Origin: Anaeramoeba ignava BMAN
Lineage: Eukaryota; Protista; Anaeramoebae
Reading direction: 5' to 3'
DNA: 64,000 bases
Assembly: GCA_028826165.1 (NCBI GenBank)
Contig: JAPDFW010000013.1
Coordinates: 1 to 64,000, forward strand
Part shown: positions 22,557-57,774 of the stretch, one piece after another
How the letters are laid out: every line of letters begins with the position of its first letter
Numbering within the stretch: position 1 is the first letter of the stretch
Position numbers and translations under genes: made by a program
The notes under the pieces: generated by a model
What the model was told of the DNA's origin: nothing
The model's input: only the letters and a program-made list of their open reading frames with translations
The model's database searches: none

Positions 22557-23816
<1,260 letters not shown>

Positions 23817-25177: not shown

Positions 25178-25271
25178 AAAATCTTTTTCATTTTTTTTCA
25201 TTTTTTTTGTTTTTTGTTTTGTTTTTTGTTTTTGTTTTTATTTTTGTTTTATTTTTCTCAAATAAAAATTT

Positions 25272-32426: not shown

Positions 32427-34207
32427 TTAAAAAATTAAGCATTTTTCTTTCTTTTTTTGATTATTAAATTTGTTAATTAATAAATCAAATAAATTTGGGT
32501 TTGTTTGATTTAATTGAAAATAATCAATTCCAGTTTGAATTTCATTAATTATTTCTTTTGTAATTTGAATTCCATCTTTAATTTGATTTGAATAAATCCA
32601 ATATTCAAATATTTCAAATGATTTATTACTTAATTCACTATAATCTGTAACTTTATTAGAAGTATCATTTGTTACAGATAAAAACATTCCTCGATATAAT
32701 TCACTTCTCATTATTAATATTAATTTTGGAAATTTATATTGTTTTTCTTTTCTTTCAATTATAAAATCTTTTTCATTTTCATTTTCATTTAAATAAATTC
32801 TTTTCATTGTTTCTTCAATTTTTCATTTGAATTTATAATTTCTTTAATTTCAGAATATAATTTTGGATTTATTATTCTGTTTGAATAAATCATTTCAAAT
32901 ATTTGATTTGATTCTTTAATTGATTTTTTTGAAATAATTTCTTGAAGTTTTTCAATTTCATTTTGATTTTGATTTAATCTATATTTCAATATTAATTTAT
33001 GAGCTTCAATTATTTCTCCATTTTTGGTTTTAAATGAAATATTGCAAAATTCTTTTCTTCTAAATAATTTTATCAAATCTTCTTCAAGATTGGAAAAAGA
33101 AGGAGAATAATAAAGAAATGAATTACCATCTCCACAAGAAACATGATAATTAGAAATATTTTCATTAAATCTTAATTTAGGAAGTTCAATTTGAATTGGA
33201 ATTGATTGTTCTATTATATCTCCAGTTCCTAATTCACCATTTATATTATATCCAAATCCAATTAATTTCTTGGAAGTTAAAATCAAAGTATGTTGATATC
33301 CAACAGAAAAATCAAGAATATTATCATCATTTTCAAATAAAGATGATTTGATTTGAGTAAATTCATAAGTATCTTCATCTTTGCCAAGTCCATTAAATTC
33401 ATAATTTCCACATGAATAAAGTTTTCTTTTTGGATTTTCATTTTCATCTTCAATCAACATTATTGAATTAGATCCGCATTGAATATCAATTATTTTACCT
33501 TTTGGAATATTTTGAATTTTGGTTAATTTTTGGATTTTTGTTTCTTCTTTTCTTGATTCTCCTCCTAATCCAAGTTGAGCAAATTCATTATTTCCGCATC
33601 CAAATAATTCTTGATTTGAATTTAAAAGAAAAACAGAACTAGAATAATTTCCTGAAAATACTTTAGAAACATTTTTCATCATTAAAATTGGTTTTTCTGT
33701 TTTTTTCATTGTTTCAGAATCAAATCCAAGTTGACCATTTTCATTTGAACCAATTCCGTAAACATTTTGATTTGAAGTTAATAAGTAAATTGAACAAGCA
33801 CCAGAAACAATATCTTGAATTATTCTATCATTTGTATCTTCAATTAATGATGAAATATTAATAAATTCTTTTGGATTAATATTAAATCCTTTGGCAAATA
33901 CATTTCCTTCTATTGTTAAAATAGCTACATTTTCAGAACCAACAGTTACTTTTTGAATATTTTCTTCAATTTGGATTTTTTGAGGTTTTTGATATGAATC
34001 ATTTTCATTTAAATATTCTATTGCTTTTCCATTTTTAAAAAGGAAAATTGTTGAAAGACTTGATGATGAAATTTGTTTAATTTGTTTTTCATTTTCATTT
34101 TCATTTTCATTTTCAAATTTAAATTGAATTGGTTTTGTTATTGAATCTGGTTCATTTTTGATAAGTATTGGAAATTGATTTGCACCAAAAAATAAACAAT
34201 CATTCAT
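32427..34207 (-). CDS. RCC1-BTB protein, copy 2 (frameshift ~32820); ends KKKEKCLIF
   Basis: Paralogue of copy 1; one A missing in a homopolymer relative to the intact copies. Confidence 0.85.
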
Positions 34208-34555
34208 TTTTAAAAAGAAAAAAAATGAAAAAATGATTTGGAACTTTTTTATTTTAATTTTAATTTTAATTTTAATTTTGATTTTAATTTTAATTTTGAA
34301 TTTTAATTTAAATTTTATTTTTAATTTTAATTTTAATTTTAATTTTAATTTTAATTTTAATTTTAATTTTAATTTTAAATTTTAATTTTAATTTTAATTT
34401 TAATTTTGATTTAATTTTGATTTTAATTTTAATTTTAATTTTTAATTTTAATTTTAATTTTAATTTTAAATTTAATTTTAATTTTAATTTTAATTTTAAT
34501 TTTAATTTTAATTTTAATTTGTATTTTAATTTTAATTTTAATTTTAATTTTAATT

Positions 34556-36373
34556 TTAATTTTGATTATTAAATTTGTTAATTAATAAATCAAATAAATT
34601 TGGTTTTGTTTGATTTAATTGAAAATAATCAATTCCAATTTTAATTTCATTAATAATTTCTTGTGTAATTTGAATTTCATCTTTGATTTGATTTGAATAA
34701 ATCCAATATTCAAATATTTGAAATGCTTTATTACTTAATTCACTATAATCTGTAACTTTATTAGAAGTATCATTTGTTACGGATAAAAACATTCCTCGAT
34801 ATAATTCACTTCTCATTATTAATATTAATTTTGGGAATTTATATTGTTTTTCTTTTCTTTCAATTATAAAATCTTTCTCATTTTCATTTTCATTTTCATT
34901 TAAATAAATTCTTTTCATTGTTTCTTCTATTTTTTCATTTGAATTTATAATTTCTTTAATTTCAGAATATAATTTTGGATTTATAATTCTGTTTGAATAA
35001 ATCATTTCAAATATTTGATTTGATTCTTTAATTGATTTATTTGAAATAATTTCTTGAAGTTTTTCAATTTCATTTTGATTTTGATTTAATCTATATTTCA
35101 ATATTAATTTATGAGCTTCAATTATTTCTCCATTTTCTGTTTTAAATGAAATATTACAAAATTCTTTTCTTCTAAATAATTTTATCAAATCTTCTTCAAG
35201 ATTAGAAAAAGAGGAAAGAAAAGGAGAATAATAAAGAAATGATTTTGAAAATCCACAAGAAAGATGATAATTAGAAATATTTTCATTAAATCTTAATTTA
35301 GGAAGTTTGATTTGAATTGGAATTGATTGATAATTGAAATCTCCAATTCCTAATTGACCAGAATGATTACTTCCAAATACAATCAATTTTCTTTTGGAAG
35401 TTAAAATCAAAGTATGATCATATCCAACAGAAAAATCAAGAATAATATCATCATCATTTTCAAATAAAGATAATTCTATTTCAGTAAATTCATAAGTATT
35501 TTGAAACATTTTGTCAAATCCATTAAATTTATGATCTCCACATGAATAAAGTTTTCTTTTTGGATTTGGATTTTCATTTTCATTTTCAATCAGCATTATT
35601 GAATGAGAAAACCCACATTGAATATCAATTATTTTGCCTTTTGGAATATTTTGGATTTTGGTTAATTTTTGGATTTTTGTTTCTTCTTTTCTTGATTCTC
35701 CTAATCCAAGTTGGCCATATGCATTATTTCCACATCCAAATAATTCTTGATTTGAATTTAAAAGAAAAACATGATTTGAAGTATTTCCTGAAAATATTTT
35801 AGAAACATTTTTCATCATTAAAATTGGTTTTTCTGTTTTTTCAAGTGCTTCATAATCAAAACCAAGTTGATCATATCGATTTGAACCAATTCCATAAGCA
35901 TTTTGATTTGAAGTTAATAAGTAAATTGAATAAGCACCAGAAACAATATCTTGAATTATTCTATCATTTTTATCTTGAATTATTCTATCATTTTTATCTT
36001 CAATTAATGATGAAATATTGATAAATTCTTTTGGATTATTTGAATTGATATCTTCTCCTTTTGCAAATACATTTCCTTCTATTGTTAAAATAGCTTCATT
36101 TTCAGAACCAACAGTTACTTTTTGAATATTTTCAATTTGGATTTTTTCAGGATTTTGATTTGAATCATTTTCATTTAAATATTCTATTGCTTTTCCATTT
36201 TTAAAAAGGAAAATTGTTGAAAGACTTGATGTTGAAATTTGCTTAATTTGTTTTTCATTTTCATTTTCATTTTCATTTTCAAATTTAAATTGAATTGGTT
36301 TTGTTATTTCATTTGATTCATTTTTGAAAAGTTTTGGATATTGATTTTCACCAAAAAATAAACAATCATTCAT
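34556..36373 (-). CDS. RCC1-BTB protein, copy 3 (intact); ends FNNQN, no CaaX
   Basis: 605-aa ORF; includes an 8-aa internal duplication DKNDRIIQ. Confidence 0.9.
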   Translation of the reverse strand: MNDCLFFGENQYPKLFKNESNEITKPIQFKFENENENENEKQIKQISTSSLSTIFLFKNGKAIEYLNENDSNQNPEKIQIENIQKVTVGSENEAILTIEGNVFAKGEDINSNNPKEFINISSLIEDKNDRIIQDKNDRIIQDIVSGAYSIYLLTSNQNAYGIGSNRYDQLGFDYEALEKTEKPILMMKNVSKIFSGNTSNHVFLLNSNQELFGCGNNAYGQLGLGESRKEETKIQKLTKIQNIPKGKIIDIQCGFSHSIMLIENENENPNPKRKLYSCGDHKFNGFDKMFQNTYEFTEIELSLFENDDDIILDFSVGYDHTLILTSKRKLIVFGSNHSGQLGIGDFNYQSIPIQIKLPKLRFNENISNYHLSCGFSKSFLYYSPFLSSFSNLEEDLIKLFRRKEFCNISFKTENGEIIEAHKLILKYRLNQNQNEIEKLQEIISNKSIKESNQIFEMIYSNRIINPKLYSEIKEIINSNEKIEETMKRIYLNENENENEKDFIIERKEKQYKFPKLILIMRSELYRGMFLSVTNDTSNKVTDYSELSNKAFQIFEYWIYSNQIKDEIQITQEIINEIKIGIDYFQLNQTKPNLFDLLINKFNNQN

Positions 36374-36605
36374 TTTTGAAAAAGAAAAAAAATGAAAAAA
36401 ATATTTTTTTTGGAATTTTTATTTTAATTTTAATTTTAATTTTAATTTTAATTTTAATTTTTAATTTTAATTTTAATTTTAATTTTAATTTTAATTTTTA
36501 ATTTTAATTTTAATTTTAATTTTAATTTTAATTTTAATTTTAATTTTAATTTTAATTTTAATTTTAATTTTGATTTTAATTTTAATTTTAATTTTAATTT
36601 TAATT

Positions 36606-38379
36606 TTAATTTTGATTATTAAATTTGTTAGTTAATAAATCAAATAAATTTGGATTTGTTTGATTTAATTGAAAATAATCAATTCCAATTTGAATTTCAT
36701 CAATTATTTCTTGTGTAATTTGAATTTCATCTTTAATTTGATTTGAATAAATCCAATATTCAAATATTTGAAATGATTTATTACTTAATTCACTATAATC
36801 TGTAACTTTATTAGATTTATCTTCTGTTACAGATAAAAACATTCCTCGATATAATTCACTTCTCATTATTAATATTAATTTTGGAAATTTATATTGTTTT
36901 TCTTTTCTTTCAATAATAAAATCTTTTTCATTTTCATTTTCATTTTCATTTAAATAAATTCTTTTCATTGTTTCTTCAATTTTTTCATTTGAATTTATAA
37001 TTTCTTTAATTTCAGAATATAATTTTGGATTTATTTTGGAATTGTTTGAATAAATCATTTCAAATATTTGATTTGATTCTTTAATTGATTTTTGAAATAA
37101 TTTCTTGAAGTTTTTCAATTTGATTTTCATAATCTTTTAATCTATATTTCAATATTAATTTATGAGCTTCAATTATTTCTCCATTTTCGGTTTTAAATGA
37201 AATATCACAAAATTCTTTTCTTCTAAATAATTTTATCAAATCTTCTTCAAGATTGGAAAAAGAAGGAGAATAATAAAGAAATGAATTATAAACTCCACAA
37301 TGAACATGATAATTAGAAATATTTTCATTAAATCTTAATTTAGGAAGTTCAATTTGAGTTGGAATCGGTTTATATTCTGTATCTCCAGTTCCTAATTCAC
37401 CATTTATATTTCTTCCAAATCCAATCAATTTCCCTTTTTCGGTTAAGATTAAAGTATTTTCATATCCAACAGAAAAATCAAGAATATTATCATCATTTTC
37501 AAATAAAGATGATTTGATTTCAAAAAAAGATGTGAGATATTCAGTTTGGCTATTTCCATTGAATTGAGGTTCACCACACGAATAAAGTTTTCTTTTTGGA
37601 TTTTGATTTTGATTTTCATCTTCAATTTCAATCAACATAACTGAATGCCAATTTCCTGTTTGAATATCAATTATTTTACCTTTTGGAATATTTTGGATTT
37701 TGGTTAATTCTTTCATATTTTCTTCTTCTGTTTCTTTTATTTCTAATCCAACTTGACCATAGCAATTATATCCACATCCAAATAATTCTTGATTTGAATT
37801 TAAAAGAAAAACAGAATAAGAAGGAATTCCTGAAAATATTTTAGAAACATTTTTCATCATTAAAATTGGTTTTTCTGTTTTTTTAAATGTTTCAGAATCA
37901 AAACCAAGTTGAGCAAAAAAATTTGAACCAATTCCATAAGCATTTTGATTTGAAGTTAATAAGTAAATTGAATTATATCCAGAAACAACATCTTGAATTA
38001 TTCTATCATTTGTATCTTCAATTAATGATGAAATATTGATAAATTCTTTTGGATTTTTTGGATTAATATCTTTTCCTTTGGCAAATACATTTCCTTCTAT
38101 TGTTAAAATAGCTTCATTTTGAACACCAACAGTTACTTTTTGAATATTTTCAATTTGGATTTTTTGAAGATTTTGTTTTGAATCATTTTGATTTAAATAT
38201 TCTATTGCTTTTCCATTTTTAAAAAGGAAAATTGTTGAAAAATAACCTGATGCAATTTGTTTAATTTGTTTTTCATTTTCATTTTCAAATTTAAATTGAA
38301 TTGGTTTTGTTATTTTATTTGGTTTATTTTTGATAAGTATTGGATATTGATTTAAACCAAAAAATAAGCAATCATTCAT
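36606..38379 (-). CDS. RCC1-BTB protein, copy 4 (frameshift ~37090); no CaaX
   Basis: ORFs 37081-38379 and 36606-37130; A-run shorter than in the paralogues. Confidence 0.85.
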
Positions 38380-38639
38380 TTTTGAAAAGAAAAAAATGAA
38401 AAAATAATTTTGAATTTTAATTTTAATTTTAATTTTAATTTTAATTTTAATTTTAATTTTAATTTTAATTTTAATTTTGATTTTAATTTTAATTTTAATT
38501 TTAATTTTAATTTTAATTTTAATTTTGATTTTAATTTTGATTATTAAATTTGTTAATTAATAAATCCAATAAATTTGGATTTGTTTGATTTAATTGAAAA
38601 TAATCAATTCCTCTTTTAATTTCATTAATAATTTCTTTT

Positions 38640-40432
38640 TTAAAAAATTAAGCATTTTTCTTTCTTTTGATTTTGATTATTAAATTTGTTAATTAATAAA
38701 TCAAATAAATTTGGATTTGTTTGATTTAATTGAAAATAATCAATTCCAATTTGAATTTCATCAATTATTTCTTGTGTAATTTGAATTTCTTCTTTAATTT
38801 GATTTGAATAAATCCAATATTCAAATATTTCAAATGATTTATTACTTAATTCACTATAATCTGTAACTTTATTAGAAGTATCATCTTTTACAGATAAAAA
38901 CATTCCTCGATATAATTCACTTCTCATTATTAATATTAATTTTGGAAATTTATATTGTTTTTCTTTTCTTTCAATTATAAAATCTTTTTCATTTTCATTT
39001 TCATTTTCATTTAAATAAATTCTTTTCATTGTTTCTTCAATTTTTCATTTAAATTTATAATTTCTTTAATTTCAGAATATAATTTTGGATTTATTATTCT
39101 GTTTGAATAAATCATTTCAAATATTTGATTTGATTTTTTAATTGATTTTTTTGAAATAATTTCTTGAAGTTTTTCAATTTGATTTTGATTTTGATTTAAT
39201 CTATATTTCAATATTAATTTATGAGCTTCAATTATTTCTCCATTTTTGGTTTTAAATGAAATATCACAAAATTCTTTTCTTTCAAATAATTTTATCAAAT
39301 CTTCTTCAAGATTGGAAAAAGGAGAAGAATAATAAAGAAATGAATTACCATATCCACAAGAAACATGATAATTAGAAATATTTTCATTAAATCTTAATTT
39401 AGGAAGTTCAATTTGGATTGGAATTGATTGTTTTATGAAATCTCCAGTTCCTAATTCACCAAAAAAATTATCTCCAAATCCAATTAATTTCCCTTTTGAT
39501 GTTAAAATCAAAGTATGTTGATATCCAACAGAAAAATCAAGAATATTATCATCATTTTCAAATAAAGATGATTTGATTTCAGTAAATTCATAAATATCTT
39601 CATATATTTTGCCAAGTCCATTAGATCGATAATCTCCACATGAATAAAGTTTTCTTTTTGGATTTTCATTTTCATCTTCAATCAACATTACTGAATTAGA
39701 TCCGCATTGAATATCAATTATTTTGCCTTTTGGAATATTTTGAATTTTGGTTAATTTTTGGATTTTTGTTTCTTCTTTTCTTGATTCTCCTAATCCAAGT
39801 TGAGCAAATTCATTATATCCGCATCCAAATAATTCTTGATTTGAATTTAAAAGAAAAACATGATTTGAATAATTTCCTGAAAATATTTTAGAAACATTTT
39901 TCATCATTAAAATTGGTTTTTCTGTTTTTTTAAGTGTTTCAGAATCAAAAGCAAGTTGACCGTTATGATTTGAACCAATTCCATAAGTATTTTGATTTGA
40001 AGTTAATAAGTAAATTGAACAAACACCAGAAACAATATCTTGAATTATTCTATCATTTGTATCTTCAATTAATGATGAAATATTAATAAATTCTTTTGGA
40101 TTTTTTGGATTAATATCAATTCCTTTGGCAAATACATTTCCTTCTTTTGTTAAAATAGCTACATTGTGAGAGCTAACAGTTACTTTTTGAATATTTTCAA
40201 TTTGGATTTTTTGAGGTTTTTGATATGAATCATTTTCTTCTAAATATTGGATTGCTTTTCCATTTTTAAAAAGGAAAATTGTTGAGAAATAACCTGATGA
40301 AATTTGTTTAATTTGTTTTTCATTTTCATTTTCATTTTCAAATTTAAATTGAATTGGTTTTGTTATTGAATCTATTTCATTTTTGATAAGTATTGGAAAT
40401 TGATTTGAACCAAAAAATAAGCAATCATTCAT
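38640..40432 (-). CDS. RCC1-BTB protein, copy 5 (frameshift ~39043); ends QKKEKCLIF
   Basis: ORFs 39026-40432 and 38640-39029; closest to copy 2. Confidence 0.85.
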
Positions 40433-40686
40433 TTTTGAAAAGAAAAAAATGAAAAAATGATTTTGCTTTTTATTTTAATTTTAATTTTAATTTTAATTTT
40501 AATTTTAATTTTAATTTTGATTTTAATTTTAATTTTAATTTTAATTTTAATTTTAATTTTAATTTTAATTTTAATTTTAATTTTAATTTTAATTTTAATT
40601 TTAATTTTAATTTTAATTTTAATTTTAATTTTGATTTTAATTTTAATTTTAATTTTTAATTTTTGATTTTGATTTTAATTTTAATT

Positions 40687-42465
40687 TTAATTTTGATTAT
40701 TAAATTTGTTAATTAATAAATCAAATAAATTTGGGTTTGTTTGATTTAATTGAAAATAATCAATTCCTGTTTGGATTTCATCAATAATTTCTTGTGTAAT
40801 TTGAATTTCATCTTTAATTTGATTTGAATAAATCCAATATTCAAATATTTGAAATGATTTATTACTTAATTCACTATAATCTGTAACTTTATTTGATTTA
40901 TCTTCTGTTACAGATAAAAACATTCCTCGATATAATTCACTTCTCATTATTAATATTAATTTTGGAAATTTATATTGTTTTTCTTTTCTTTCAATAATAA
41001 AATCTTTTTCATTTTCATTTTCATTTAAATAAATTCTTTTCATTGTTTCTTCAATTTTTTCATTTGAATTTATAATTTCTTTAATTTCAGAATATAATAT
41101 TGGATTTATTATTCTGTTTGAATAAATCATTTCAAATATTTGATTTGATTCTTTAATTGATTTTTTTGAAATAATTTCTTGAAGTTTATCAATTTGATTT
41201 TCTTGATTTTGATTTAATCTATATTTCAATATTAATTTATGAGCTTCAATTATTTCTCCATTTTCGGTTTTAAATGAAATATTACAAAATTCTTTTCTTT
41301 CAAATAATTTTATCAAATCTTCTTCAAGATTGGAAAAAGAAGGAGGAGAATAATAAATAAATGAACTAAATCCTCCACAAGAAACATGATAATTGGAAAC
41401 ATCTTCATTAAATCTTAATTCAGGAAGTTCAGTTTGGAATGGAATTGATGTATAACTGTAATCTCCAGTTCCTAATTGACCAGAATAATTACTGCCAAAT
41501 ACTATTAGTTTTGAATTTGAAGTTAAAATCAAAGTATGTGCATATCCAACAGAAAAATCAAGAATATTATCATCATTTTCAAATAAAGATGATTTGATTT
41601 CAGTAAATTCATAAATATTTTCATCTTTGCCAAGTCCATTAAATTTATGATCTCCACATGAATAAAGTTTTCTTTTTGGATTTTGATTTTCATCTTCATC
41701 TTCAATCAACATTATTGAATGAGAATATCCGCATTGAATACCAATTATTTTGCCTTTTGGAATATTTTGGATTTTGGTTAAATTTCGGATATATGCTTCT
41801 TTTCTTGATTCTCCTAATCCAAGTTGGCCAAATTGATTATCACCACATCCAAATAATTCTTGATTTGAATTTAAAAGAAAAACATGATTAGAATAGTTTC
41901 CTGAAAATATTTTAGAAACATTTTTCATCATTAAAATTGGTTTTTCTGTTTTTTTAAGTGTTTCAGAATCAAAACCAAGTTGATCATATCGGTTTGAACC
42001 AATTCCATAAGCATTTTGATTTGAAGTTAATAAGTAAATTGAATTTCTTCCAGAAACAATATCTTGAATTATTCTATCATTTGTATCTTCAATTAATGAT
42101 GAAATATTGATAAATTCTTTTGGATTATTTGAATTGATATCATATCCTTTTGCAAATACATTTCCTTCTTTTGTTAAAATAGCTTCATTTCCAGAACCAA
42201 CAGTTACTTTTTGAATATTTTCTTCAATTTGGATTTTTGAAGGATTTTGATTTGAATCATGGAGATATTCTATTGCTTTTCCATTTTTAAAAAGGAAAAT
42301 TGTTGAGAAACTTGATGATGAAATTTGTTTAATTTGATTTTCATTTTCATTTTCATTTTCATTTTCATTTTCAAATTTAAATTGAATTGGTTTTGTTATT
42401 TTATTTGGTTCATTTTTGATAAGTATTGGATATTCATTTTGACCAAAAAATAAACAATCATTCAT
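40687..42465 (-). CDS. RCC1-BTB protein, copy 6 (intact); no CaaX
   Basis: 592-aa ORF. Confidence 0.9.
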   Translation of the reverse strand: MNDCLFFGQNEYPILIKNEPNKITKPIQFKFENENENENENENQIKQISSSSFSTIFLFKNGKAIEYLHDSNQNPSKIQIEENIQKVTVGSGNEAILTKEGNVFAKGYDINSNNPKEFINISSLIEDTNDRIIQDIVSGRNSIYLLTSNQNAYGIGSNRYDQLGFDSETLKKTEKPILMMKNVSKIFSGNYSNHVFLLNSNQELFGCGDNQFGQLGLGESRKEAYIRNLTKIQNIPKGKIIGIQCGYSHSIMLIEDEDENQNPKRKLYSCGDHKFNGLGKDENIYEFTEIKSSLFENDDNILDFSVGYAHTLILTSNSKLIVFGSNYSGQLGTGDYSYTSIPFQTELPELRFNEDVSNYHVSCGGFSSFIYYSPPSFSNLEEDLIKLFERKEFCNISFKTENGEIIEAHKLILKYRLNQNQENQIDKLQEIISKKSIKESNQIFEMIYSNRIINPILYSEIKEIINSNEKIEETMKRIYLNENENEKDFIIERKEKQYKFPKLILIMRSELYRGMFLSVTEDKSNKVTDYSELSNKSFQIFEYWIYSNQIKDEIQITQEIIDEIQTGIDYFQLNQTNPNLFDLLINKFNNQN

Positions 42466-42798
42466 TTTTGAAAAGAAAAAAATGAAAAAATGATTTTTGG
42501 AACTTTTTTATTTTAATTTTAATTTTAATTTTAATTTTAATTTTAATTTTAATTTTAATTTTGATTTTAATTTTAATTTTAATTTTAATTTTAATTTTAA
42601 TTTTGATTTTAATTTTAATTTTAATTTTAATTTTAATTTTAATTTTGATTTTAATTTTAATTTTAATTTTAATTTTTAATTTTAATTTTAATTTTAATTT
42701 TAATTTTAATTTTAATTTTAATTTTTAATTTTTGATTTTAATTTTTAATTTTAATTTTAATTTTAATTTTAATTTTAATTTTAATTTTAATTTTAATT

Positions 42799-44607
42799 TT
42801 AATTTTGATTTTGATTATTAAATTTATTAATTAATAAATCAAATAAATTTGGATTTGTTTGATTTAATTGAAAATAATCAATTCCAATTTGAATTTCATT
42901 AATTATTTCTTGTGTAATTTCAATTTCATTTTTAATTTGATTTGAATAAATCCAATATTCAAATATTTGAAATGATTTATTACTTAATTCACTATAATCT
43001 GTAACTTTATTTGATTTATCATTTGTTACAGATAAAAACATTCCTCGATATAATTCACTTCTCATTATTAATATTAATTTTGGAAATTTATATTGTTTTT
43101 CTTTTCTTTCAATAATAAAATCTTTTTCATTTTCATTTTCATTTTCATTTTCATTTTCATTTAAATAAATTCTTTTCATTGTTTCTTCAATTTTTTCATT
43201 TGAATTTATAATTTCTTTAATTTCTGAATATAATATTGGATTTATTTTGGAATTATTTGAATAAATCATTTCAAATATTTGATTAGATTCTTTAATTGAT
43301 TTTGTTGAAATAATTTCTTGAAGTTTTTCAATTTGATTTTCATCTTTTAATCTATATTTCAATATTAATTTATGAGCTTTGATTATTTCTCCATTTTCGG
43401 TTTTAAATGAAATATCACAAAATTCTTTTCTTCTAAATAATTTTATCAAATCTTCTTCAAGATTGGAAAAAGAGGAAAGAAAAGGAGAATAATAAAGAAA
43501 TGAATTATAATATCCACAAGAAATATGATAATTGAAAATATCTTCATTAAATCTTAATTTAGGAAGTTCAATTTGAAATGGAATTGATTGATAATTTGTA
43601 TCTCCAGTTCCTAATTGTCCATAATAATTACTGCCAAATCCTATTAATTTTGAATTGGAAGTTAAAATTAAAGTATGAGCTCTTCCAACAGAAAAATCAA
43701 GAATATTATCATTTTCAAATAAAGATGATTTGATTTCAGTAAATCCATAAGTATCTTCATCTTCATTTTTCCCAAGTCCATTATATTGAGAATATCCACA
43801 TGAATAAAGTTTTCTTTTTGGATTTGGATTTTCATCTTCATTTTCAATCAAAATTATTGAATGAGAATATCCACATTGAATACCAATTATTTTGCCTTTT
43901 GGAATATTTTGGATTTTGGTTAATTTTTGGATTTTTTCTTCTTTTCTTGATTCTCCTAATCCAAGTTGACCATATCTATTATCACCGCATCCAAATAATT
44001 CTTGATTTGAATTTAAAAGAAAAATTGAATTTGAGAAAATTCCTGAAAATATTTTAGAAACATTTTTCATCATTAAAATTGGTTTTTCTGTTTTTTTAAG
44101 TGTTTCATAATCAAAACCAAGTTGATCATATCGATTTGAACCAATTCCATAAGCATTTTGATTTGAAGTTAATAAGTAAATTGAATGAGCTCCAGAAACA
44201 ATATCTTGAATTATTCTATCATTTTTATCTTCAATTAATGATGAAATATTAATAAATTCATTTGGATTTTCTGAATCAATATATTCTCCTTTGGCAAATA
44301 CATTTCCTTCTATTGTTAAAATAGCTTCATTTTCAGAACCAACAGTTACTTTTTGAATATTTTCAATTTGGATTTTTGAAGGATTTTGATTTGATTCTTG
44401 GAGATATTCTATTGCTTTTCCATTTTCAAAAAGGAAAATTATTGAAAACCCTGATGAAATTTGTTTAATTTGATTTTCATTTTCATTTTCATTTTCATTT
44501 TCATTTTCATTTTCAAATTTAAATTGAATTGGTTTTGTTATTATATCTTGTTCATTTTTGATAAGTTTTGGATATTTATTTTCACCAAAAAATAAACAAT
44601 CATTCAT
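42799..44607 (-). CDS. RCC1-BTB protein, copy 7 (intact); no CaaX
   Basis: 602-aa ORF. Confidence 0.9.
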   Translation of the reverse strand: MNDCLFFGENKYPKLIKNEQDIITKPIQFKFENENENENENENENQIKQISSGFSIIFLFENGKAIEYLQESNQNPSKIQIENIQKVTVGSENEAILTIEGNVFAKGEYIDSENPNEFINISSLIEDKNDRIIQDIVSGAHSIYLLTSNQNAYGIGSNRYDQLGFDYETLKKTEKPILMMKNVSKIFSGIFSNSIFLLNSNQELFGCGDNRYGQLGLGESRKEEKIQKLTKIQNIPKGKIIGIQCGYSHSIILIENEDENPNPKRKLYSCGYSQYNGLGKNEDEDTYGFTEIKSSLFENDNILDFSVGRAHTLILTSNSKLIGFGSNYYGQLGTGDTNYQSIPFQIELPKLRFNEDIFNYHISCGYYNSFLYYSPFLSSFSNLEEDLIKLFRRKEFCDISFKTENGEIIKAHKLILKYRLKDENQIEKLQEIISTKSIKESNQIFEMIYSNNSKINPILYSEIKEIINSNEKIEETMKRIYLNENENENENENEKDFIIERKEKQYKFPKLILIMRSELYRGMFLSVTNDKSNKVTDYSELSNKSFQIFEYWIYSNQIKNEIEITQEIINEIQIGIDYFQLNQTNPNLFDLLINKFNNQNQN

Positions 44608-44973
44608 TTTTAAAAAGAAAAAAAAATTATTTTTGAAAAATTTATTTTTGGAATTTTAATTTTAATTTTAATTTTGATTTTAATTTTAATTTTAATTTTA
44701 ATTTTAATTTTAATTTTAATTTTAATTTTAATTTTAATTTTAATTTTAATTTTAATTTTAATTTTAATTTTAATTTTAATTTTAATTTTAATTTTAATTT
44801 AAATTTAATTTTAATTTTTAATAAAATTTTAAAATTTTAATTTTTTTAATTTGTTTGATTTATTTTAATTGAAAATAATCAGTTTAAATTTTAATTTTGA
44901 TTATTAAATTTGTTAATTAATAAATGTTTCTTTGATTTAATTTTAATTTCAATTTCATCTTTATTATTTGATT

Positions 44974-46632
44974 TCAATTTTTAATTTGATTTGAATAAAT
45001 CCAATATTCAAATATTTGAAATGATTCTTCACTTAATTCACTATAATCTGTAACTTTGTTAGAAGTATCATCTTTTACAGATAAAAACATTCCTCGATAT
45101 AATTCACTTCTCATTATCAATATTAATTTTGGAAATTTATATTGTTTTTCTTTTCTTTCAATTATAAAATCTTTTTCATTTTCATTTAAATAAATTCTTT
45201 TCATTGTTTCTTCAATTTTTTCATTTAAATTTATAATTTCTTTAATTTCAGAATATAATTTTGGATTTATAATTCTGTTTGAATAAATCATTTCAAATAT
45301 TTGATTAGATTCTTTAATTGATTTTTTTGAAATAATTTCTTGAAGTTTTTCAATTTGATTTTGATTTTGATTTTGATTTAATCTATATTTTAATATTAAT
45401 TTATGAGCTTTGATTATTTCTCCATTTTTGGTTTTAAATGAAATATCACAAAATTCTTTTCTTCTAAATAGTTTTATCAAATCTTCTTCAAGATTGGAAA
45501 AAGAAGGAGAAGAATAATAAAGAAATGAATTTTCATATCCACAAGAAAGATGATAATTAGATATATCAATATTATCGGTCAATAGTAATTTAGGAATCTT
45601 TCCTTTCACAGGAATTGAATGTTCTTTTGTATCTCTAGTCCCTAATTGGCCAAACTGATTATCTCCGAATCCTATTAATTTCCCTTTGGAAGTTAAAATC
45701 AAAGTATGAGCTCTTCCAACAGAAAAATCAAGAATATCATCATCATTTTCAAATAAAGATGATTTGATTTCAGTAAATTCTCTTGTATCTTCATTTTTGC
45801 CAAGTCCATTATAATGACAATTTCCACATGAATAAATTTTTCTTTTTGGATTTTCATTTTGATTTTCATTTTCAATTAACATTATTGAATAAGCATGCCC
45901 ACATTTAATATCAATTATTTTGCCTTTTGGAATATTTTGGATTTTGGTTATCTCTCCAGTTATTGGTTGGGGTGTTCTTCCTAATCCAAGTTGGCCAAAA
46001 TAATTATATCCGCATCCAAATAATTCTTGATTTGAATTCAAAAGAAAAACTGAATTTATAAAACTTCCTGAAAATATTTTAGAAACATTTTTCATCATTA
46101 AAATTGGTTTTTCTCTTTTTTTACCCCAAACTTCAGTATCACATCCAATTTGACCATATTGATTTGAACCAAAGCCATAAGCATTTTGATTTGAAGTTAA
46201 TAAATAAATTGTTTCAGAACCAAAAACAATATCTTGAATTATTCTATCATTTGGATCTTCAATTAATGATGAAATATTAATAAATTGATACAGGTTTTTT
46301 TGGTCGATATTTTCGCCTTTTGCAAATACATTTCCTTCTATTGTTAAAATAGCTTCATTTCTATAAAATCCTACAGTTACTTTTCGAATATTTTCAATTT
46401 GGATTTTTCTTGCATTTTGTTTTGATTCTTTTAAATATTTAATTGCTTTTCCATTTTTAAAAAGGAAAATTGTTGCAAAACTTGATGATGAAATTTGTTT
46501 AATTTGTTTTTCATTTTCATTTTCATTTTCATTTTCAAAATTAAATTGAATTGATTTTTTTATTATTTCTTTTGTTTCATTTTGTAAAAGTTTTGGAAAT
46601 TTATTCCAACCAAAAAAGAAATTTTGATTCAT
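44974..46632 (-). CDS. RCC1-BTB protein, copy 8 (most divergent; C-terminally truncated)
   Basis: 552-aa ORF stops at YSNQIKN*, with scrambled tail remnants downstream. Confidence 0.8.
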   Translation of the reverse strand: MNQNFFFGWNKFPKLLQNETKEIIKKSIQFNFENENENENEKQIKQISSSSFATIFLFKNGKAIKYLKESKQNARKIQIENIRKVTVGFYRNEAILTIEGNVFAKGENIDQKNLYQFINISSLIEDPNDRIIQDIVFGSETIYLLTSNQNAYGFGSNQYGQIGCDTEVWGKKREKPILMMKNVSKIFSGSFINSVFLLNSNQELFGCGYNYFGQLGLGRTPQPITGEITKIQNIPKGKIIDIKCGHAYSIMLIENENQNENPKRKIYSCGNCHYNGLGKNEDTREFTEIKSSLFENDDDILDFSVGRAHTLILTSKGKLIGFGDNQFGQLGTRDTKEHSIPVKGKIPKLLLTDNIDISNYHLSCGYENSFLYYSSPSFSNLEEDLIKLFRRKEFCDISFKTKNGEIIKAHKLILKYRLNQNQNQNQIEKLQEIISKKSIKESNQIFEMIYSNRIINPKLYSEIKEIINLNEKIEETMKRIYLNENEKDFIIERKEKQYKFPKLILIMRSELYRGMFLSVKDDTSNKVTDYSELSEESFQIFEYWIYSNQIKN

Positions 46633-52689: not shown

Positions 52690-52920
52690 AGCTTCATTTA
52701 AAATTAAAATTCATTTATAAAATCAAAATCAAAATTAAAATTCATTTAATAATTAAAATTCATTTATAAAATTAAAATTCATTTATAAAATTAAAATTCA
52801 TTTATAAAATTAAAATTAAAATTCAAATTAAAATTAAAATATTAAAATTAAAATTAAAATTAAAATTAAAATTAAAATTAAAATTAAAATTAAAATTAAA
52901 ATTAAAATTAAAATTAAAAT
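52690..52920. repeat. (AAAATT)n / AAAATTCATTTAT repeat between ALG13 and the SelK 3' end
   Basis: Directly visible. Confidence 0.85.
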
Positions 52921-52998
52921 AATTTTGTTTTCAAAGTTTATTTCTTTTCCAAATTTTCTTTTCTAAATTATCTTTCTTCATTTTTTTTCTTTTTAATA

Positions 52999-53085
52999 TC
53001 TTTTTTTCTTACTTTGTGTTCGAAAATCTCAATCCAAAAAAAAGGTTTCTTGAGATTTTGTCATATACAAAGAAAGAAAAAAAGA
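52999..53085 (-). promoter_or_regulatory. SECIS element of the SelK-like gene
   Basis: Minus strand: ctttgt-at-ATGAC-aaaatctcaa-g-AAA-cc(t8)gg-a-ttgagatttt-CGAA-c-acaaag. AUGA/GA quartet, perfect 10-bp helix II, apical AAA, and helix I. Confidence 0.85.
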
Positions 53086-53163
53086 AAGAGAAAATCATTT
53101 TAAAATTTTAAAAAAAAAAGAAATTACTAAAAAGGATTAAATCTGAATTAGAAAAAATCCTTT

Positions 53164-55314
53164 TTAGCAATTTCCCCCACCTCATCCACCACCACCACTA
53201 AAGAAAGAAAGTGTAGAAAATGAATTTCGTCGATTTTGTGGAATTGGTTGTTGTCTAGGTTGAGGTCTTGTTTCATCTGGTTCTTCATAAAATAAAGTTT
53301 GTAAACTAAAAATTTATAATTAAATTTATAATTAAATTTATAATTAAATTTATAATTAAATTTATAATTAAATTTATAATTAAATTTATAATTAAATTTA
53401 TAATTATATTTATAATAAATTTATAATTAAATTTATAATTAAATTTATAATTAAATTTATAATTAAATTTATTATTATAATTATAATAAAATTAATAATT
53501 AAATTTATAATTAAATTTATAATCAAATTTATAATTAAATTTATAATTATATTTATAATTAAATTTATAATTAAATTTAAAATTAAATTTATAATTAAAT
53601 TTATAATTAAATTTGTAATAAAATTTATAATTATATTTTATAAACAAAATTTATAATTAAATTTATAATTAAATTTATAATTAAATTTATAATTAAATTT
53701 ATAATTATATTTATAATAAAATTAATAATTAAATTTATAATAAAATTAATAATTAAATTTATAATAAAATTTATAATTAAATTTATAATTAAATTTATAA
53801 TTAAATTAATAATTAAAATTTATAATAAAAATTTAAATATATAATTAAAATTATAATTAAATTTATAATTAAATTTATAATTAAACTTATAATTAAATTT
53901 ATAATTAAATTTATAATTAAATTTATAATTAAATTTATAATTAAATTTAATTAAATTTATATTTTATATAATTAAAATTATAATTAAAAATATAATTAAA
54001 TTTATAATTAAATTTATAATTATATTTTATAATTAAATTTATAATAAAAATTTATAATTAAATTTATAATTAAATATATAATTAAACTTATAATTAAAAT
54101 ATATAATTAAATTTATAATTAAATTTATAATTATATTTATAATTAAATTTATAATTAAATTTATAATTAAATTTATAATTAAATTTATAATTAAATTTAT
54201 ATAATTAAATTTATAATTAAAATTATAATTAAATTTATAATTAAATTTATAATTAAATTTATAATTAAATTAATTAAATTTATAATTAAATTTATAATTA
54301 AATTTTATAATTAAATTAATAATTAAATTTATAAAAAATTTATAATAAAATTTATAATTATATTTATAAACAAAATTTATAATTAAATTTATAATTAAAT
54401 TTATAATTAAATTTATAATTAAATTTATAATTAAATTTATAATTAAATTTATAATTAAATTTAAAACTAAATTTATAATAAAATTAATAATTAAATTAAT
54501 AATTAAATTTATAATAAAATTTATAATTAAATTTATAATATTTATAATTAAATTTATAATTAAATTTATAATTAAATTTAAATTTATAATTAAATTTATA
54601 ATAAAATTTATAATTAAAATATATATTTATATTTATAATTAAATTTATAATTAAATTTATAATTAAAAATATAAAATTTATAATTAAATTTATAATTAAA
54701 TTTATAATTAAATTTATAATTAAATTTATAATTAAATTTATAATTAAATTTATAATTAAATTTATAATTTATTTATAATTATATTTATAATTAAATTTAT
54801 AATTAAATTTATAATTAAATTTATAATTAAATTTATAATTAAATTTATAATTAAATTTATAATTAAAATTTATAATTAAATTTATAATTAAATTTATAAT
54901 TAAATTTATAATTAAAATTTATAATTAAATTTATAATTAAATTATATTTTATAATTAAATTTATAATTAAATTTATAATTAAATTTATAATTAAATTTAT
55001 AAACAAATTTATAATTATATTTATAATTAAATTTATAATTAAATTTATAATTAAATTTATAATTAAATTTATAATTAAATTTATAATTATATTTATAATT
55101 AAATTTATAATTAAATTTATAATTAAATTTATAATTATATTTATAATTAAATTTATATTAAAATTTATAATTAAATTTATAATTAAATTGTTTACAAAAT
55201 TTTTAAAAATTGTAAAATGGCTAATAAAATGTTTTGTATTTTTGTAAAAATTCTTGATTCATTTGATTCTGTTCTTGTTTGTTGTGGAAAAACTTTTCTT
55301 CTATTATTTTCCAT
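53164..55314 (-). CDS. SELENOK: Selenoprotein K-like (86 aa, in-frame UGA=Sec at 53184-53182); exons 55314-55196 and 53305-53164
   Basis: MENNRRKVFPQQTRTESNESRIFTKIQNILLAILQFLKIFLQTLFYEEPDETRPQPRQQPIPQNRRNSFSTLSFFSGGGUGGGNC*. Hydrophobic helix ending FLQTL, P/R-rich linker, C-terminal GGU, downstream SECIS. Confidence 0.82.
53306..55195 (-). repeat. 1.89-kb GT-AG intron of the SelK-like gene filled with (AAATTTATAATT)n
   Basis: Donor gtaaac at 55195, acceptor tttag at 53306; 12-mer repeat throughout. Confidence 0.88.
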
Positions 55315-55431
55315 TTATAAAAAAAATAATTGAAAAAAAAAATGAAAAAAATGAAAAACAAAATCATTTTGAATTTTATTTGTTTTTTTTTTTGAAAAGA
55401 AAAAAAAAGGAAAAAAATTTATTTTTAATAA

Positions 55432-55493
55432 TCATTGACTTTCAGAAAATATTCTTCCAAAGATTTCAAATATTTCCTTCATTTGTTCAACAA
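55432..55493 (-). promoter_or_regulatory. SECIS element (form II) of the SelW-like gene
   Basis: Minus strand: ttgttga-acaa-ATGAA-ggaaatat-ttg-AAA-tctt-tgg-aaga-atattttc-TGAA-ag-tcaatga. Quartet, helix II, AAA plus apical minihelix, and helix I. Confidence 0.85.
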
Positions 55494-55612
55494 TTATTAA
55501 AAATTGGAAAAAAAAATGTGGCTTTTATGTTGAAAGATTGTTTGAGAAATGAAAAAAGAAAAAGAAAAAGAAAGAAGAAGAAATGTTCAGTTTTTTTTTG
55601 ATTTGAATTTGT

Positions 55613-57418
55613 TTACTTTTCTTTTTCTTCTTTTTCTTCTTTTTTTTCTTTTTGAGATTCTAAATGTTTTTCAATAAGAGTAACAAGTTCTTCAGGTTCT
55701 GGATATCTTCCTGTTTTTTTACGTGAAAAAATGAGTGTTCCATCATCAAGATGTACTTCAAACAAATATCCTGAATGTCCGTGTTTTGGAGCAACTGTAT
55801 ATCCTTTTTCTTTTAATCCATTAGCCACCCAAAGGTATCGTCCAAAGATACCTCATCCTATTTTAAAATTATTATTAAAATTATTATTAAAATTAATTAT
55901 TATTAAAATTATTATTAAAATTATTATTAAAAATTATTATTAAAATTATTATTAAAATTATTATTAAAATTATTATTAAAATTATTATTAAATTTATTAT
56001 TAAATTTATTATTAAAATTATTATTAAAATTATTATTAAAATTATTATTAAATTTATTATTAAATTTATTATTAAATTTATTATTAAATTTATTATTAAA
56101 TTTATTATTAAAATTATTATTAAATTTATTATTAAAATTATTATTAAAATTATTATTAAAATTATTATTAAAATTATTATTAAAATTATTATTAAAATTA
56201 TTATTAAAATTATTATTAAAATTATTATTAAATTTATTATTAAATTTATTATTAAAATTATTATTAAATTTATTATTAAAATTATTATTAAAATTTATTA
56301 TTAAAATTATTATTAAATTTATTATTAAATTTATTATTAAATTTATTATTAAAATTTATTATTAAAATTTATTATTAAAATTATTATTAAAATTATTATT
56401 AAAATTTATTATTAAATTTATTATTAAATTTATTATTAAATTTATTATTAAATTTATTATTAAATTTATTATTAAAATTGTTATTAAATTTATTATTAAA
56501 TTTATTATTAAATGATTATTAAATTTATTATTAAATTTATTATTAAATTTATTATTAAAATTATTATTAAAATTATTATTAAAATTATTATTAAAATTAT
56601 TATTAAATTTATTATTAAAATTATTATTAAATTATTATTGAATTTATTATTAAATTTATTATTAAAATTATTATTAAAATTATTATTAAAATTATTATTA
56701 AAAATTATTATTAAAATTATTATTAAATTTATTATTAAAATTATTATTAAAATTATTATTAAAATTTATTATTAAATTTATTATTAAATTTATTATTAAA
56801 ATGATTATTAAAATTTATTATTAAAATTTATTATTAAAATTATTATTAAAATTATTATTAAAAATTATTATTAAAATTTATTATTAAATTTATTATTAAA
56901 TTTATTATTAAAATTATTATTAAAATTATTATTAAAATTATTATTAAATTTATTATTAAAATTATTATTATATTTATTATTAAATTTATTATTAAATTTA
57001 TTATTAAATTTATTATTAAATTTATTATTAAAATTATTATTAAATTTATTATTAAATTTATTATTAAATTTATTATTAAATTTATTATTAAAATTATTAT
57101 TAAAATTATTATTAAATTTATTATTAAAATTATTATATTTATTATTAAAATTATTATTTATTATTAAATTTATTATTAAAATTATTATTAAATTTATTAT
57201 TAAATTTGTTATTAAAATTATTATTAAAATTATTATTAAATTTATTATTAAAATTATTATTAAAATTATTATTAAATTTATTATTAAAATAGATTGCTAA
57301 TTGATTGGGGAGATTTGGTTAAATTATTAATTTTAATTGATTTTAATTTTGAGAACTTTAATTGAGATTAATTTTTGATTGTTGATTTACCTCCACAATA
57401 AGTAATTATGACTTTCAT
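55613..57418 (-). CDS. SELENOW: Rdx-family (SelW-like) selenoprotein, 90 aa, CxxU motif (UGA at 55855-55853); exons 57418-57391 and 55857-55613
   Basis: MKVIITYCGGUGIFGRYLWVANGLKEKGYTVAPKHGHSGYLFEVHLDDGTLIFSRKKTGRYPEPEELVTLIEKHL.. The I.YC..UG start and G.FEV..G.LIFS.K..G.YP motif are Rdx signatures; SECIS downstream. Confidence 0.9.
55858..57390 (-). repeat. 1.53-kb GT-AG intron of the SelW-like gene filled with (AAAATTATTATT/AAATTTATTATT)n
   Basis: Donor gtaaat at 57390, acceptor aaatag at 55858. Confidence 0.88.
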
Positions 57419-57774
57419 TAAGTCACTAAAATTTCTTTTTTGAAAATTTTGAAGTTTTTGCGTTGTGTTTTTATTTGTTTTAAATGTTTTAAAAAAAGAA
57501 AAAAAAATGAAAAAAAAAATGAAAAAAAAAAATCTTTTAATAAATTTTATTTTTGTTTTTGTGGGCAAATTAAAAAAATAAAAATAAAAAAAGGAGAAAA
57601 AAAAAATAAATTTTTCTTAATTTAAAAATAAATAAAAAAATAAAATAAAAAAAATTGTTTTTCATTTTTTTTCTTTTTGCTTTTAATTTTCTTTACAATT
57701 ACAAATTAAAAAAAAAAACAATAAATTGAAAAAATAAAAATTAAAAAACAATAATTAATAATAATAATAATAAA

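Follow-up and report, generated by a model that had tools for sequence, protein, structure and literature searches.

The minus strand of a 64-kb stretch of the genome of Anaeramoeba ignava BMAN, a metamonad, carries two neighbouring two-exon genes arranged head to tail, the first of the SelW/Rdx type and the second SelK-like, and we consider it highly probable (roughly 0.85) that these are two separate genes, each encoding a small selenoprotein. The stretch, hereafter the window, belongs to contig JAPDFW010000013.1 of assembly GCA_028826165.1. Each gene has a single intron that is almost all 12-nt satellite; a TGA lies in frame in its last exon, and a SECIS-type hairpin follows 90-120 nt past its TAA. 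A spacer of 298 nt lies between the SelW-like stop and the SelK-like ATG. The assignment is based on sequence features, a family match of the first gene, conservation and the presence of genes for the selenocysteine (Sec) machinery. We propose that the satellite-filled intron would be removed from each mRNA at the predicted junctions, that the UGA in the last exon would then be decoded as Sec, and that the SECIS in each mRNA's own 3'UTR would recruit the Sec-specific elongation factor with Sec-tRNA(Sec).

The features of the locus, in the order of transcription, are:

57504..57523, minus strand: two promoter-like motifs (TTCATTTT) that precede the SelW-like ATG by 93 and 105 nt
57391..57418, minus strand: SelW-like exon 1, ATG at 57418, encoding M-K-V-I-I-T-Y-C-G and the first base of the next Gly codon
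55858..57390, minus strand: SelW-like intron, GTAAAT...TAG, 1533 nt, 98.2% A+T, with the 12-nt satellite at 55859-57290 (119 copies)
55613..55857, minus strand: SelW-like exon 2, coding part, with the putative Sec codon TGA at 55855-55853 and TAA at 55615-55613
55434..55491, minus strand: SelW-like SECIS, Rfam SECIS_1 26.4 bits, 121 nt past the stop
55339..55355, minus strand: two promoter-like motifs (TTCATTTT) within the 298-nt spacer, which precede the SelK-like ATG by 32 and 41 nt
55196..55314, minus strand: SelK-like exon 1, ATG at 55314, 39 codons and 2 bases, with an in-frame TAA directly upstream of the ATG
53306..55195, minus strand: SelK-like intron, GTAAAC...TAG, 1890 nt, 99.4% A+T, with the 12-nt satellite at 53310-55189 (158 copies)
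53164..53305, minus strand: SelK-like exon 2, coding part, with TGA at 53184-53182, then G-G-G-N-C and TAA at 53166-53164
53012..53072, minus strand: SelK-like SECIS, Rfam SECIS_1 31.9 bits, 91 nt past the stop and 112 nt past the TGA

A sequence-only reading of the window had placed the SelW stop at 55613 and the SelK ATG at 55314 on the minus strand, and all of these coordinates hold, as do the satellite-filled introns, the in-frame TGAs (in the contexts C-G-G-U and G-G-G-G-U) and a SECIS for each gene. Its statement that the pair had been missed by ORF calling is only partly correct: GenBank does cover the locus, with a single Sec-free model, KAJ5080130.1, which is named "selenoprotein t" and is a chimera of both genes. 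No other credible ORF was found on either strand between 52950 and 57500. A general reassignment of TGA was rejected, since it is an ordinary stop in the window and terminates 9 of its 22 long ORFs.

A SelW-like gene with a split active-site motif

The predicted SelW-like product has 90 codons, and its C8-G-G-U11 motif would span the junction 57391/55857, as placed by the inferred acceptor. The piece following the Sec codon matches the Pfam family Rdx (PF10262) with 31.6 bits (E 2e-7, cut-off 22.6), and the same family was recovered with 30.5 bits in a six-frame search of the genome and with 34.4 bits for the GenBank protein KAJ5080130.1. Weak sequence matches in the PDB were likewise to Rdx members, namely Atu0228 (2fa8, E 0.0019) and MIEN1 (2ljk, E 0.04). 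With this family, which comprises SelW, SelV, SelT, SelH and MIEN1, the A. ignava protein has in common a length of about 90 residues, an N-terminal C-x-x-U and a SECIS in the 3'UTR; it differs in being very divergent and in that a 1.5-kb satellite intron splits the active-site motif 2 nt before the Sec codon. A word-based homologue search with the SelW-like piece gave no match, and an exhaustive HMMER search returned only 10 matches among 1.84 billion representatives. We expect the product to be a thioredoxin-fold protein of the Rdx/SelW type, 90 residues long, in which the C-x-x-U active site would probably serve a redox function. The name "selenoprotein t" is a poor fit for this gene; the hydrophobic segment that gave the GenBank model its resemblance to SelT comes from the neighbouring gene.

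Conservation of the TGA codon could be followed in a paralogue within the genome (on contig C137; 64% identical) and in an orthologue found in two strains of A. flamelloides. The paralogue shares the end of exon 1, the codon position and phase of the intron and the identical GTAAAT...TAG intron ends, with a different satellite in between; its TAG is followed by GA-TGA-GG, the C-G-G-U motif with its TGA recurs, and the next 12 codons show conservation with synonymous changes. Over 66 codons the two genes differ at 16 synonymous and 23 non-synonymous positions, while the TGA and the codons that follow it are kept. The paralogue ends at its own TAA and has its own SECIS (39.5 bits). In the A. flamelloides orthologue, C-S-G-TGA-G occurs at the same spacing to a conserved K-G-Y-T-V block, and a SECIS_1-like hairpin is present.

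The public model as an annotation artefact

KAJ5080130.1 has SelW-like exon 1 and the SelK-like junction 55196/53305 in common with the two-gene reading. It skips the first TGA by using a GAG acceptor 6 nt downstream (57391 joined to 55851), by which the frame is kept and the TGA lost, then splices away the stop and the SECIS of the first gene together with the ATG of the second (junction 55617/55300), and terminates at the second TGA. Taken at face value, it describes one gene for a 163-residue, Sec-free fusion of an Rdx domain with a helix, in which the second TGA is a true stop. The record itself exists in GenBank, every one of its introns is GT-AG, and its donor at the stop of the first gene, GTAAAC, is the same as that of the SelK-like intron; moreover, the annotation pipeline had RNA-seq alignments at hand (PMC11550330). 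We nevertheless regard the one-gene model as extremely unlikely. It removes the U of the family-defining C-x-x-U, although the paralogue and both A. flamelloides strains retain this TGA, and it offers no explanation for the two SECIS hairpins, of which one falls within an "intron". Against it, too, is that the SelK-like gene has its own ATG and pair of promoter-like motifs. GAG is the least favoured splice acceptor, and the TAG upstream of it comes first. The GenBank model of the paralogue, in turn, stops at its own TAA with neither a fusion nor a SelK-like gene downstream.

The models KAJ5066207.1 (paralogue) and KAJ6237998.1 and KAJ3443578.1 (A. flamelloides) omit the Sec codon as well, and among the four GenBank models of this SelW-like family there are three different ways around the TGA; the different places at which they dodge it betray a predictor that does not allow stops in frame. 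The "fusion intron" of KAJ5080130.1 is 82.5% A+T, like UTR, whereas the real introns at the locus are 98-99%. The published genome mean is 91.9% A+T (PMC11550330). KAJ5080130.1 is an artefact of automatic annotation.

A SelK-like gene downstream

The second of the two proposed genes encodes 86 codons with the predicted Sec at position 81, and its tail reads S-G-G-G-G-U-G-G-G-N-C-stop; if exon 1 were left unspliced, a stop would follow after 40 codons. The only Pfam family matched was SelK_SelG (PF10961), at 16.5 bits (E 0.013) and below the cut-off of 23.3, for a query consisting of KAJ5080130.1 residues 89-163, which lacks 5 residues at the start and 6 at the end of the SelK-like protein. This alignment is in register, with protein residues 19-75 on profile positions 19-68 of 86. 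Neither the single SelK-like exons nor a six-frame genome search gave a match to this gene in Pfam. The 19-residue segment with the highest Kyte-Doolittle mean scores 1.58, which lies at the usual threshold and marks a borderline hydrophobic stretch. The gene is single-copy in the genome, with no detectable paralogue; a word search with the SelK-like part returned no homologue, a PDB search no match, and an atlas search a lone helix only.

We therefore call the gene SelK-like by its architecture, the Pfam match being sub-threshold. In common with SelK it has a small size, a putative single hydrophobic helix towards the N-terminus, a Pro/Arg/Gln-rich linker, a SECIS in the 3'UTR and a Gly-rich tail with Sec a few residues before the end. 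The differences are that Sec occupies the sixth position from the C-terminus, with G-G-G-N-C behind it, and that no orthologue was found. As predicted, the 86-residue product, with its putative hydrophobic helix, Pro/Gln/Arg-rich linker and Sec81 in a Gly-rich tail, would follow the SelK design, and its terminal Cys could pair with Sec.

It is conceivable that only the SelW-like gene encodes a selenoprotein, that the second ORF ends at its TGA after 80 residues, and that the hairpin beyond is a chance A+T-rich stem-loop. Only five codons follow this TGA, no homologue keeps it, the SelK_SelG match is sub-threshold, and a loose SECIS pattern has background matches, the pattern finder also marking two unrelated places in the window. 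Against this stand a 31.9-bit SECIS_1 match on the right strand 112 nt past the TGA, and a G-rich coding run that crosses the TGA, with 60% G+C in the 15 nt after it, between flanks above 80% A+T (81% in the 200 nt after the stop). Furthermore, it is typical of SelK to carry Sec close to the end of a Gly-rich tail that follows a hydrophobic helix, and nearly all Sec-using eukaryotes are expected to have SelK (PMC2375036). A single selenoprotein at this locus thus appears highly improbable to us.

SECIS elements

Canonical AUGA-AAA-GA hairpins had been claimed past the true stops of both genes, and both Rfam SECIS_1 and folding find them there, at 121 and 91 nt. SECIS elements (RF00031) were judged by an AUGA...GA quartet, a helix 2 of 9-13 bp, an unpaired AA(A), and a 3'UTR location at a distance of more than about 50 nt from the UGA, and both window elements have these structural and positional features. 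Each consists of AUGA, a helix (11/12 bp in the SelW-like, 10/11 bp in the SelK-like element), an unpaired AAA, which in the SelK-like element is followed by a mini-stem, and GA. The distance from UGA to SECIS is 364 nt in the SelW-like and 112 nt in the SelK-like gene, and the fold z-scores are -3.64 and -3.16, respectively. Over both strands of the window (128 kb), these were the only two SECIS_1 matches, and both lie in predicted 3'UTRs.

Neither element (26.4 and 31.9 bits) reaches the 35-bit Rfam gathering score. The AUGA/GA quartet, a helix 2 of 10-12 bp, the unpaired AAA and the outer helix are all shared with eukaryotic SECIS elements, but the window copies are extremely A+U-rich and therefore fall 3-9 bits short of that score. 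Genome-wide, SECIS_1 recognized only 5 elements among the scored candidates, the best being that of the paralogue at 39.5 bits; the SelK-like element, which the genome scan itself omitted, would rank third behind 39.5 and 32.2 bits. The A. flamelloides element departs from the consensus in having GUGA rather than AUGA. Among eight Anaeramoeba SECIS elements the helix sequences differ while the pairing is kept; in their MAFFT alignment the 3' arms are out of register.

Transcription units and the origin of the adjacency

Of the 22 long ORFs of the window, 14 have a TTCATTTT motif in the 105 nt before their ATG, and this motif may act as a promoter element. Because a pair of these motifs precedes its ATG, the second gene is suggested to have its own transcription start. 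Alternatively, both forms might coexist, with two selenoprotein mRNAs accompanied by a minor read-through transcript in which the first stop is spliced into codon 5 of the second gene; such a transcript would code for a fused SelW-SelK protein, and its two UGA codons would have only the distal SECIS to serve them. The GT-AG sites for this are canonical and in frame, the genes are only 298 nt apart, and the predictor used for GenBank picked 55617/55300. However, this junction is absent from the paralogue, and the second ATG has promoter-like motifs and an in-frame TAA ahead of it, which speaks for separate units, so that we consider additional read-through very unlikely.

The sequence-only reading had also proposed that the organism clusters SelW and SelK. 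The two genes are indeed adjacent here, but this is a single adjacency: the paralogue has no SelK-like neighbour downstream, and the 10 kb on either side of the A. flamelloides orthologue contain neither a SelK-like ORF nor a Gly-TGA-Gly run nor another SECIS. Most likely, one copy of a duplicated SelW-like gene landed beside the SelK-like gene, and the adjacency need not be functional. That the tandem pair is a functional unit, through co-regulation by selenium or oxygen or through alternative splicing to a two-Sec SelW-SelK fusion served by one distal SECIS, seems to us very doubtful; if such fusion splicing were true, the SECIS of the first gene would be a switch removable by splicing.

Selenocysteine machinery

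That A. ignava has a working canonical Sec system, as previously suggested, is made probable by the presence of genes for most of the machinery. The genome encodes tRNA-Sec (70.3 bits, confirmed by ARAGORN), SepSecS (404 bits), PSTK (so named by NCBI), and an SPS2 that itself carries an in-frame TGA (K-G-TGA-S-C-K-L-P-Q). eEFSec is represented by a split gene on C24 with the eEFSec-specific domains 3 and 4 (PF21131 and PF21208); the best matches to the selB profile were rejected as copies of EF-1alpha. SBP2, on the other hand, was not found, none of the ten L7Ae-domain candidates in the genome being SBP2-like. The candidates on contigs C73, C82, C130 and C55 were dismissed as ARID-like, Rpp38, eL8 and NHP2-like, respectively, and four high-scoring L7Ae matches are presumably the standard small L7Ae proteins of the ribosome or of snoRNPs. 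An SBP2 that has diverged is difficult to detect by profile. A thioredoxin reductase ending in G-C-TGA-G (GCUG), with a SECIS, and further Rdx selenoproteins are also present in the genome.

Selenoproteins in metamonads

The pair had been judged notable should the organism prove to be a metamonad, which it is; Sec use in Metamonada has, however, already been published for Spironucleus, Preaxostyla and A. pumila. SelW paralogues with UGA are known from Spironucleus (PMC2874811, PMC3916229), the only metamonad with described selenoproteins, in which SelW paralogues alone were found (PMC3916229), and a 2010 EST survey of that genus detected no SECIS elements (PMC2874811). The Sec pathway has been reported in the Preaxostyla Monocercomonoides, Paratrimastix and Trimastix (PMC6759080, PMC10703272), and A. 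pumila carries tRNA-Sec genes (bioRxiv 10.64898/2026.04.11.717937). SelK and SelW are, moreover, the two most widespread eukaryotic selenoproteins (PMC2375036). Nothing is thus overturned by the present locus, as metamonad Sec use was known and both families are expected ones. What the finding does is correct public records, KAJ5080130.1 being chimeric and the paralogue and A. flamelloides models missing the Sec codon, and it is relevant to reconstructing how early eukaryotes used Sec and to the defence of anaerobes against oxygen. With several Rdx/SelW proteins, a SelK-like protein, a GCUG thioredoxin reductase, a Sec-containing SPS2 and canonical SECIS elements in the A. ignava set, Anaeramoebae appear to keep a broader, more eukaryote-typical selenoproteome than Spironucleus.

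Structure of two adjacent minus-strand genes

The minus-strand reading of 52800-57600 is the basis for the anatomy of gene 1, a SelW-like gene of the Rdx type, and of gene 2, the SelK-like gene that follows it head to tail, and the exon structures that the sequence-only reading had proposed for both match this strand base for base. No competing ORF lies in the stretch on either strand. The features are as follows:

57418, minus strand: start of gene 1, with a 28-nt exon 1 ending T-G-T G-G-A G
57390 (GTAAAT) to 55858 (TAG), minus strand: intron of gene 1, 98.2% A+T
Exon 2 of gene 1, minus strand: opens G-A T-G-A G-G-T, TAA at 55615-55613, 90-residue product
55491-55434, minus strand: SECIS of gene 1, 26.4 bits, 121 nt after the gene 1 stop
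55314, minus strand: start of gene 2, 298 nt after the gene 1 stop; an in-frame TAA directly precedes the ATG
55196, minus strand: end of gene 2 exon 1, as read from the sequence
55195-53306, minus strand: intron of gene 2 (GTAAAC...TAG), 99.4% A+T
From 53305, minus strand: exon 2 of gene 2, with S-G-G-G-G, TGA at 53184-53182, G-G-G-N-C and TAA at 53166-53164
53072-53012, minus strand: SECIS of gene 2, 31.9 bits, 91 nt after the gene 2 stop

The predicted protein of gene 1 begins M-K-V-I-I-T-Y-C-G-G-U-G-I-F-G, and that of gene 2 comprises 86 residues with Sec at position 81. Apart from their splice sites, the introns consist of 12-nt satellites (119 copies in gene 1 and 158 in gene 2), in a genome with an A+T content of 80.65% overall and 91.86% in introns (PMC11550330). 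Since the Sec codon of each gene lies in the last exon, both mRNAs should escape junction-dependent decay at this codon. Elsewhere in the window TGA is an ordinary stop, ending 9 of the 22 long ORFs.

A hairpin downstream of each stop had also been claimed, and searching the whole window (128 kb of strand) with the Rfam SECIS_1 model returned exactly these two matches, both on the minus strand. The two scores fall below the gathering score of 35 bits, as is expected for stems so rich in A+U; genome-wide, only five matches were obtained at E <= 10 among scored candidates. Both hairpins adopt a two-helix fold, with z-scores of -3.6 (gene 1) and -3.2 (gene 2), and a simple independent pattern finder located AUGA, a 10-12 bp helix, AAA and GA in each of them, as well as in six further elements from Anaeramoeba, no two of which share a helix sequence. 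As this finder also made two unrelated background matches in the window, the pattern alone is no proof.

Conservation of the gene 1 TGA

That the TGA of gene 1 is a Sec codon is decided, as far as comparative sequence evidence goes, by its conservation in a paralogue and in A. flamelloides. The 79 residues following Sec match the Pfam Rdx family (SelT/SelW/SelH; 31.6 bits, cut-off 22.6), and a PDB sequence search gave weak matches to two Rdx members, Atu0228 and MIEN1. A word-based search retrieved no relatives of gene 1; an exhaustive search gave ten, the best being a 100% match within the 163-residue GenBank model of the locus, KAJ5080130.1, and the second KAJ5066207.1 (64% identical), encoded on contig C137. 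The DNA of this paralogue has the same architecture as gene 1: exon 1 ends T-G-T G-G-T G, a 443-nt satellite intron (GTAAAT...TAG) follows, exon 2 opens G-A T-G-A G-G-A, and 170 nt beyond its own TAA lies the best SECIS of the genome (39.5 bits). Over 66 ungapped codons of exon 2, 27 are identical, 16 synonymous and 23 non-synonymous between the two copies. The TGA is retained, and the 12 codons past it (G-I-F/Y-G-R/E-Y/F-L-W/Y-V-A-N), exactly the segment that the model KAJ5066207.1 leaves out, are conserved with silent changes.

A. flamelloides orthologues have a mean identity of only 37% to those of A. ignava (PMC11550330). Both sequenced strains of this species read M-S-I-L-I-K-Y-C-S-G-TGA-G-G/GTATGT (GTAGGT in the other strain), and beyond an intron of ~105 nt they show the same spacing to the conserved K-G-Y-T-V block as in A. 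ignava. At 140 nt past the stop there is a SECIS_1-like hairpin (25.3 bits) whose core is GUGA and not AUGA. This pattern across the paralogue and the two strains rules out that the gene 1 TGA is a sequencing error or non-coding. In the A. flamelloides orthologue (L018 10001-10570; L017 11085-11657), the intron is shifted by 7 nt relative to A. ignava and follows the Sec codon, where that of A. ignava precedes it.

The case for gene 2

Gene 2 is a selenoprotein gene with a probability of about 0.9, given its strong and well-placed SECIS, a coding run that stays G-rich across the TGA (60% G+C vs. flanks of >80% A+T), its SelK design and the presence of SelK in nearly all Sec-using eukaryotes (PMC2375036). 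That it is also a true SelK homologue is probable, with distinctly less confidence. Neither exon of gene 2 alone gave a Pfam match, a six-frame search for SelK_SelG was blank, and searches for homologues, paralogues and structural leads came back empty. When residues 89-163 of KAJ5080130.1 (P0123), i.e. the gene 2 protein without its first five and last six residues, were used as the query, SelK_SelG was the sole Pfam family reported, in register, with an E value of 0.013 and 16.5 bits vs. a cut-off of 23.3. The hydrophobic stretch of the protein is borderline.

A chimeric database model

The locus had been described as missed by ORF calling. It does have a GenBank model, KAJ5080130.1, named 'selenoprotein t', but that model is wrong and is a Sec-free chimera of gene 1 and gene 2. 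It begins with exon 1 of gene 1 and then enters exon 2 by an acceptor 6 nt further on (G-A-T-G-A-G/G-T), by which U-G is lost; next, the GT at 55616, directly ahead of the gene 1 TAA, serves as a donor and is joined to an acceptor within codon 5 of gene 2, and the remainder uses gene 2's own intron and terminates at its TGA. The other public models of Anaeramoeba SelW-like genes likewise drop the Sec codon via a moved splice site, in differing ways (three of three: KAJ5066207.1, KAJ6237998.1 and KAJ3443578.1), and those of A. flamelloides avoid the TGA differently again from those of A. ignava.

The GenBank model implies one fused gene, a disfavoured reading; the sequence favours two units. 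The C137 paralogue is a solitary gene that has a stop and a SECIS of its own and is followed by an unrelated gene. The supposed fusion intron is UTR-like at 82.5% A+T and would take out a SECIS. At the gene 1 acceptor a TAG lies upstream of the GAG used in the model, and GAG is the least favoured splice acceptor. Gene 2, moreover, has its own ATG, preceded like that of gene 1 by a motif pair:

57504-57523, minus strand: TTCATTTT pair of gene 1, at -93 and -105 from the ATG
55339-55355, minus strand: TTCATTTT pair of gene 2, at -32 and -41 from the ATG

This motif, often in tandem pairs, occurs on the coding strand 20-105 nt upstream of the ATG in 14 of the 22 long ORFs of the window and is a candidate element of A. 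ignava core promoters.

Physical clustering of selenoprotein genes, which the sequence-only reading had proposed together with a synteny check, was not seen at the two loci compared: no SelK-like gene lies beside the C137 paralogue, and nothing SelK-like and no further SECIS-like feature turned up in the 10 kb on either side of the A. flamelloides orthologue. By a post hoc estimate, the chance of some pair lying <=3 kb apart is ~0.5% for 8 or 9 selenoprotein genes in 42.8 Mb. As the two SelW-like copies of A. ignava resemble one another more closely than they resemble that of A. flamelloides, the simplest account of the adjacency would be a lineage-specific duplication that dropped one SelW-like copy beside the SelK-like gene. 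Elsewhere the window holds some nine tandem RCC1-BTB genes together with BTB-TLDc and large ankyrin-BTB genes (30601-46632, minus strand; 2646-8859; 18033-27671), which are among the expanded families reported for Anaeramoeba.

Sec machinery and further selenoprotein genes

A working Sec system in a host guessed to be a metamonad had been anticipated. The host, A. ignava, fits that guess, and the genome has tRNA-Sec (70.3 bits; called SeC, anticodon TCA, by ARAGORN), PSTK (a KTI12-family ORF exactly matching KAJ5068305.1, named L-seryl-tRNA(Sec) kinase), SepSecS (404 bits; best database relatives, including Balamuthia and A. flamelloides, ~52% identical), SPS2 (in-frame TGA within K-G-U-S-C-K-L-P-Q) and eEFSec, whose specific third and fourth domains score above cut-off; none of the ten candidates with an L7Ae domain in the genome was recognisable as SBP2. 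Higher-scoring selB matches turned out to be EF-1alpha and were not taken for eEFSec. An EF-1alpha from another contig exactly matches KAJ5073147.1 of A. ignava. The selenophosphate synthetase gene (L005/L006, G000:C64:1028999-1030481, plus strand) is split by introns and has its TGA at the canonical position; no SECIS could be located for it.

Sec in a metamonad is not notable as such, given the published precedents: SelW paralogues with a UGA codon, as well as the Sec pathway, in Spironucleus (PMC2874811, PMC3916229, PMC6397501), the pathway in Monocercomonoides, Paratrimastix and Trimastix (PMC6759080, PMC10703272), and tRNA-Sec in A. pumila (bioRxiv 10.64898/2026.04.11.717937). The word stem 'selen' is absent from the A. 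ignava genome paper (PMC11550330). What is new is modest, namely correct gene models, canonical SECIS elements, a wider selenoproteome of Anaeramoebae and a candidate metamonad SelK.

Within this wider set, a thioredoxin reductase-type ORF (L029, G000:C2:448278-451340; Pyr_redox_dim, Pyr_redox_2) ends G-C-TGA-G-stop and, by its sequence, is a classic Sec-containing TrxR, with the following element downstream:

C2:449778-449840, plus strand: SECIS of thioredoxin reductase, SECIS_1 32.2 bits

The genome also has three more Rdx-type genes. One (L013, G000:C71:143338-143559, plus strand) is a single-exon gene with C-L-V-U and 66 bits to PF10262; the pattern finder placed a SECIS-like hairpin ~110 nt after its stop, and Rfam gave none at E<=1. 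The other two, with an in-frame TGA (L016, G000:C78:150812-151006, minus strand; L032, G000:C1, SECIS at 510441-510498, minus strand), are Rdx-like without the upstream Cys at the x-x position (L-G-U-C and K-G-U); both carry a satellite-filled intron as well as a SECIS-like hairpin. Finally, a 29-bit SECIS_1 match (L030, G000:C73:332204-332265, minus strand) lies downstream of a short ORF with two TGA codons (M-C-U... and ...E-G-U-N).
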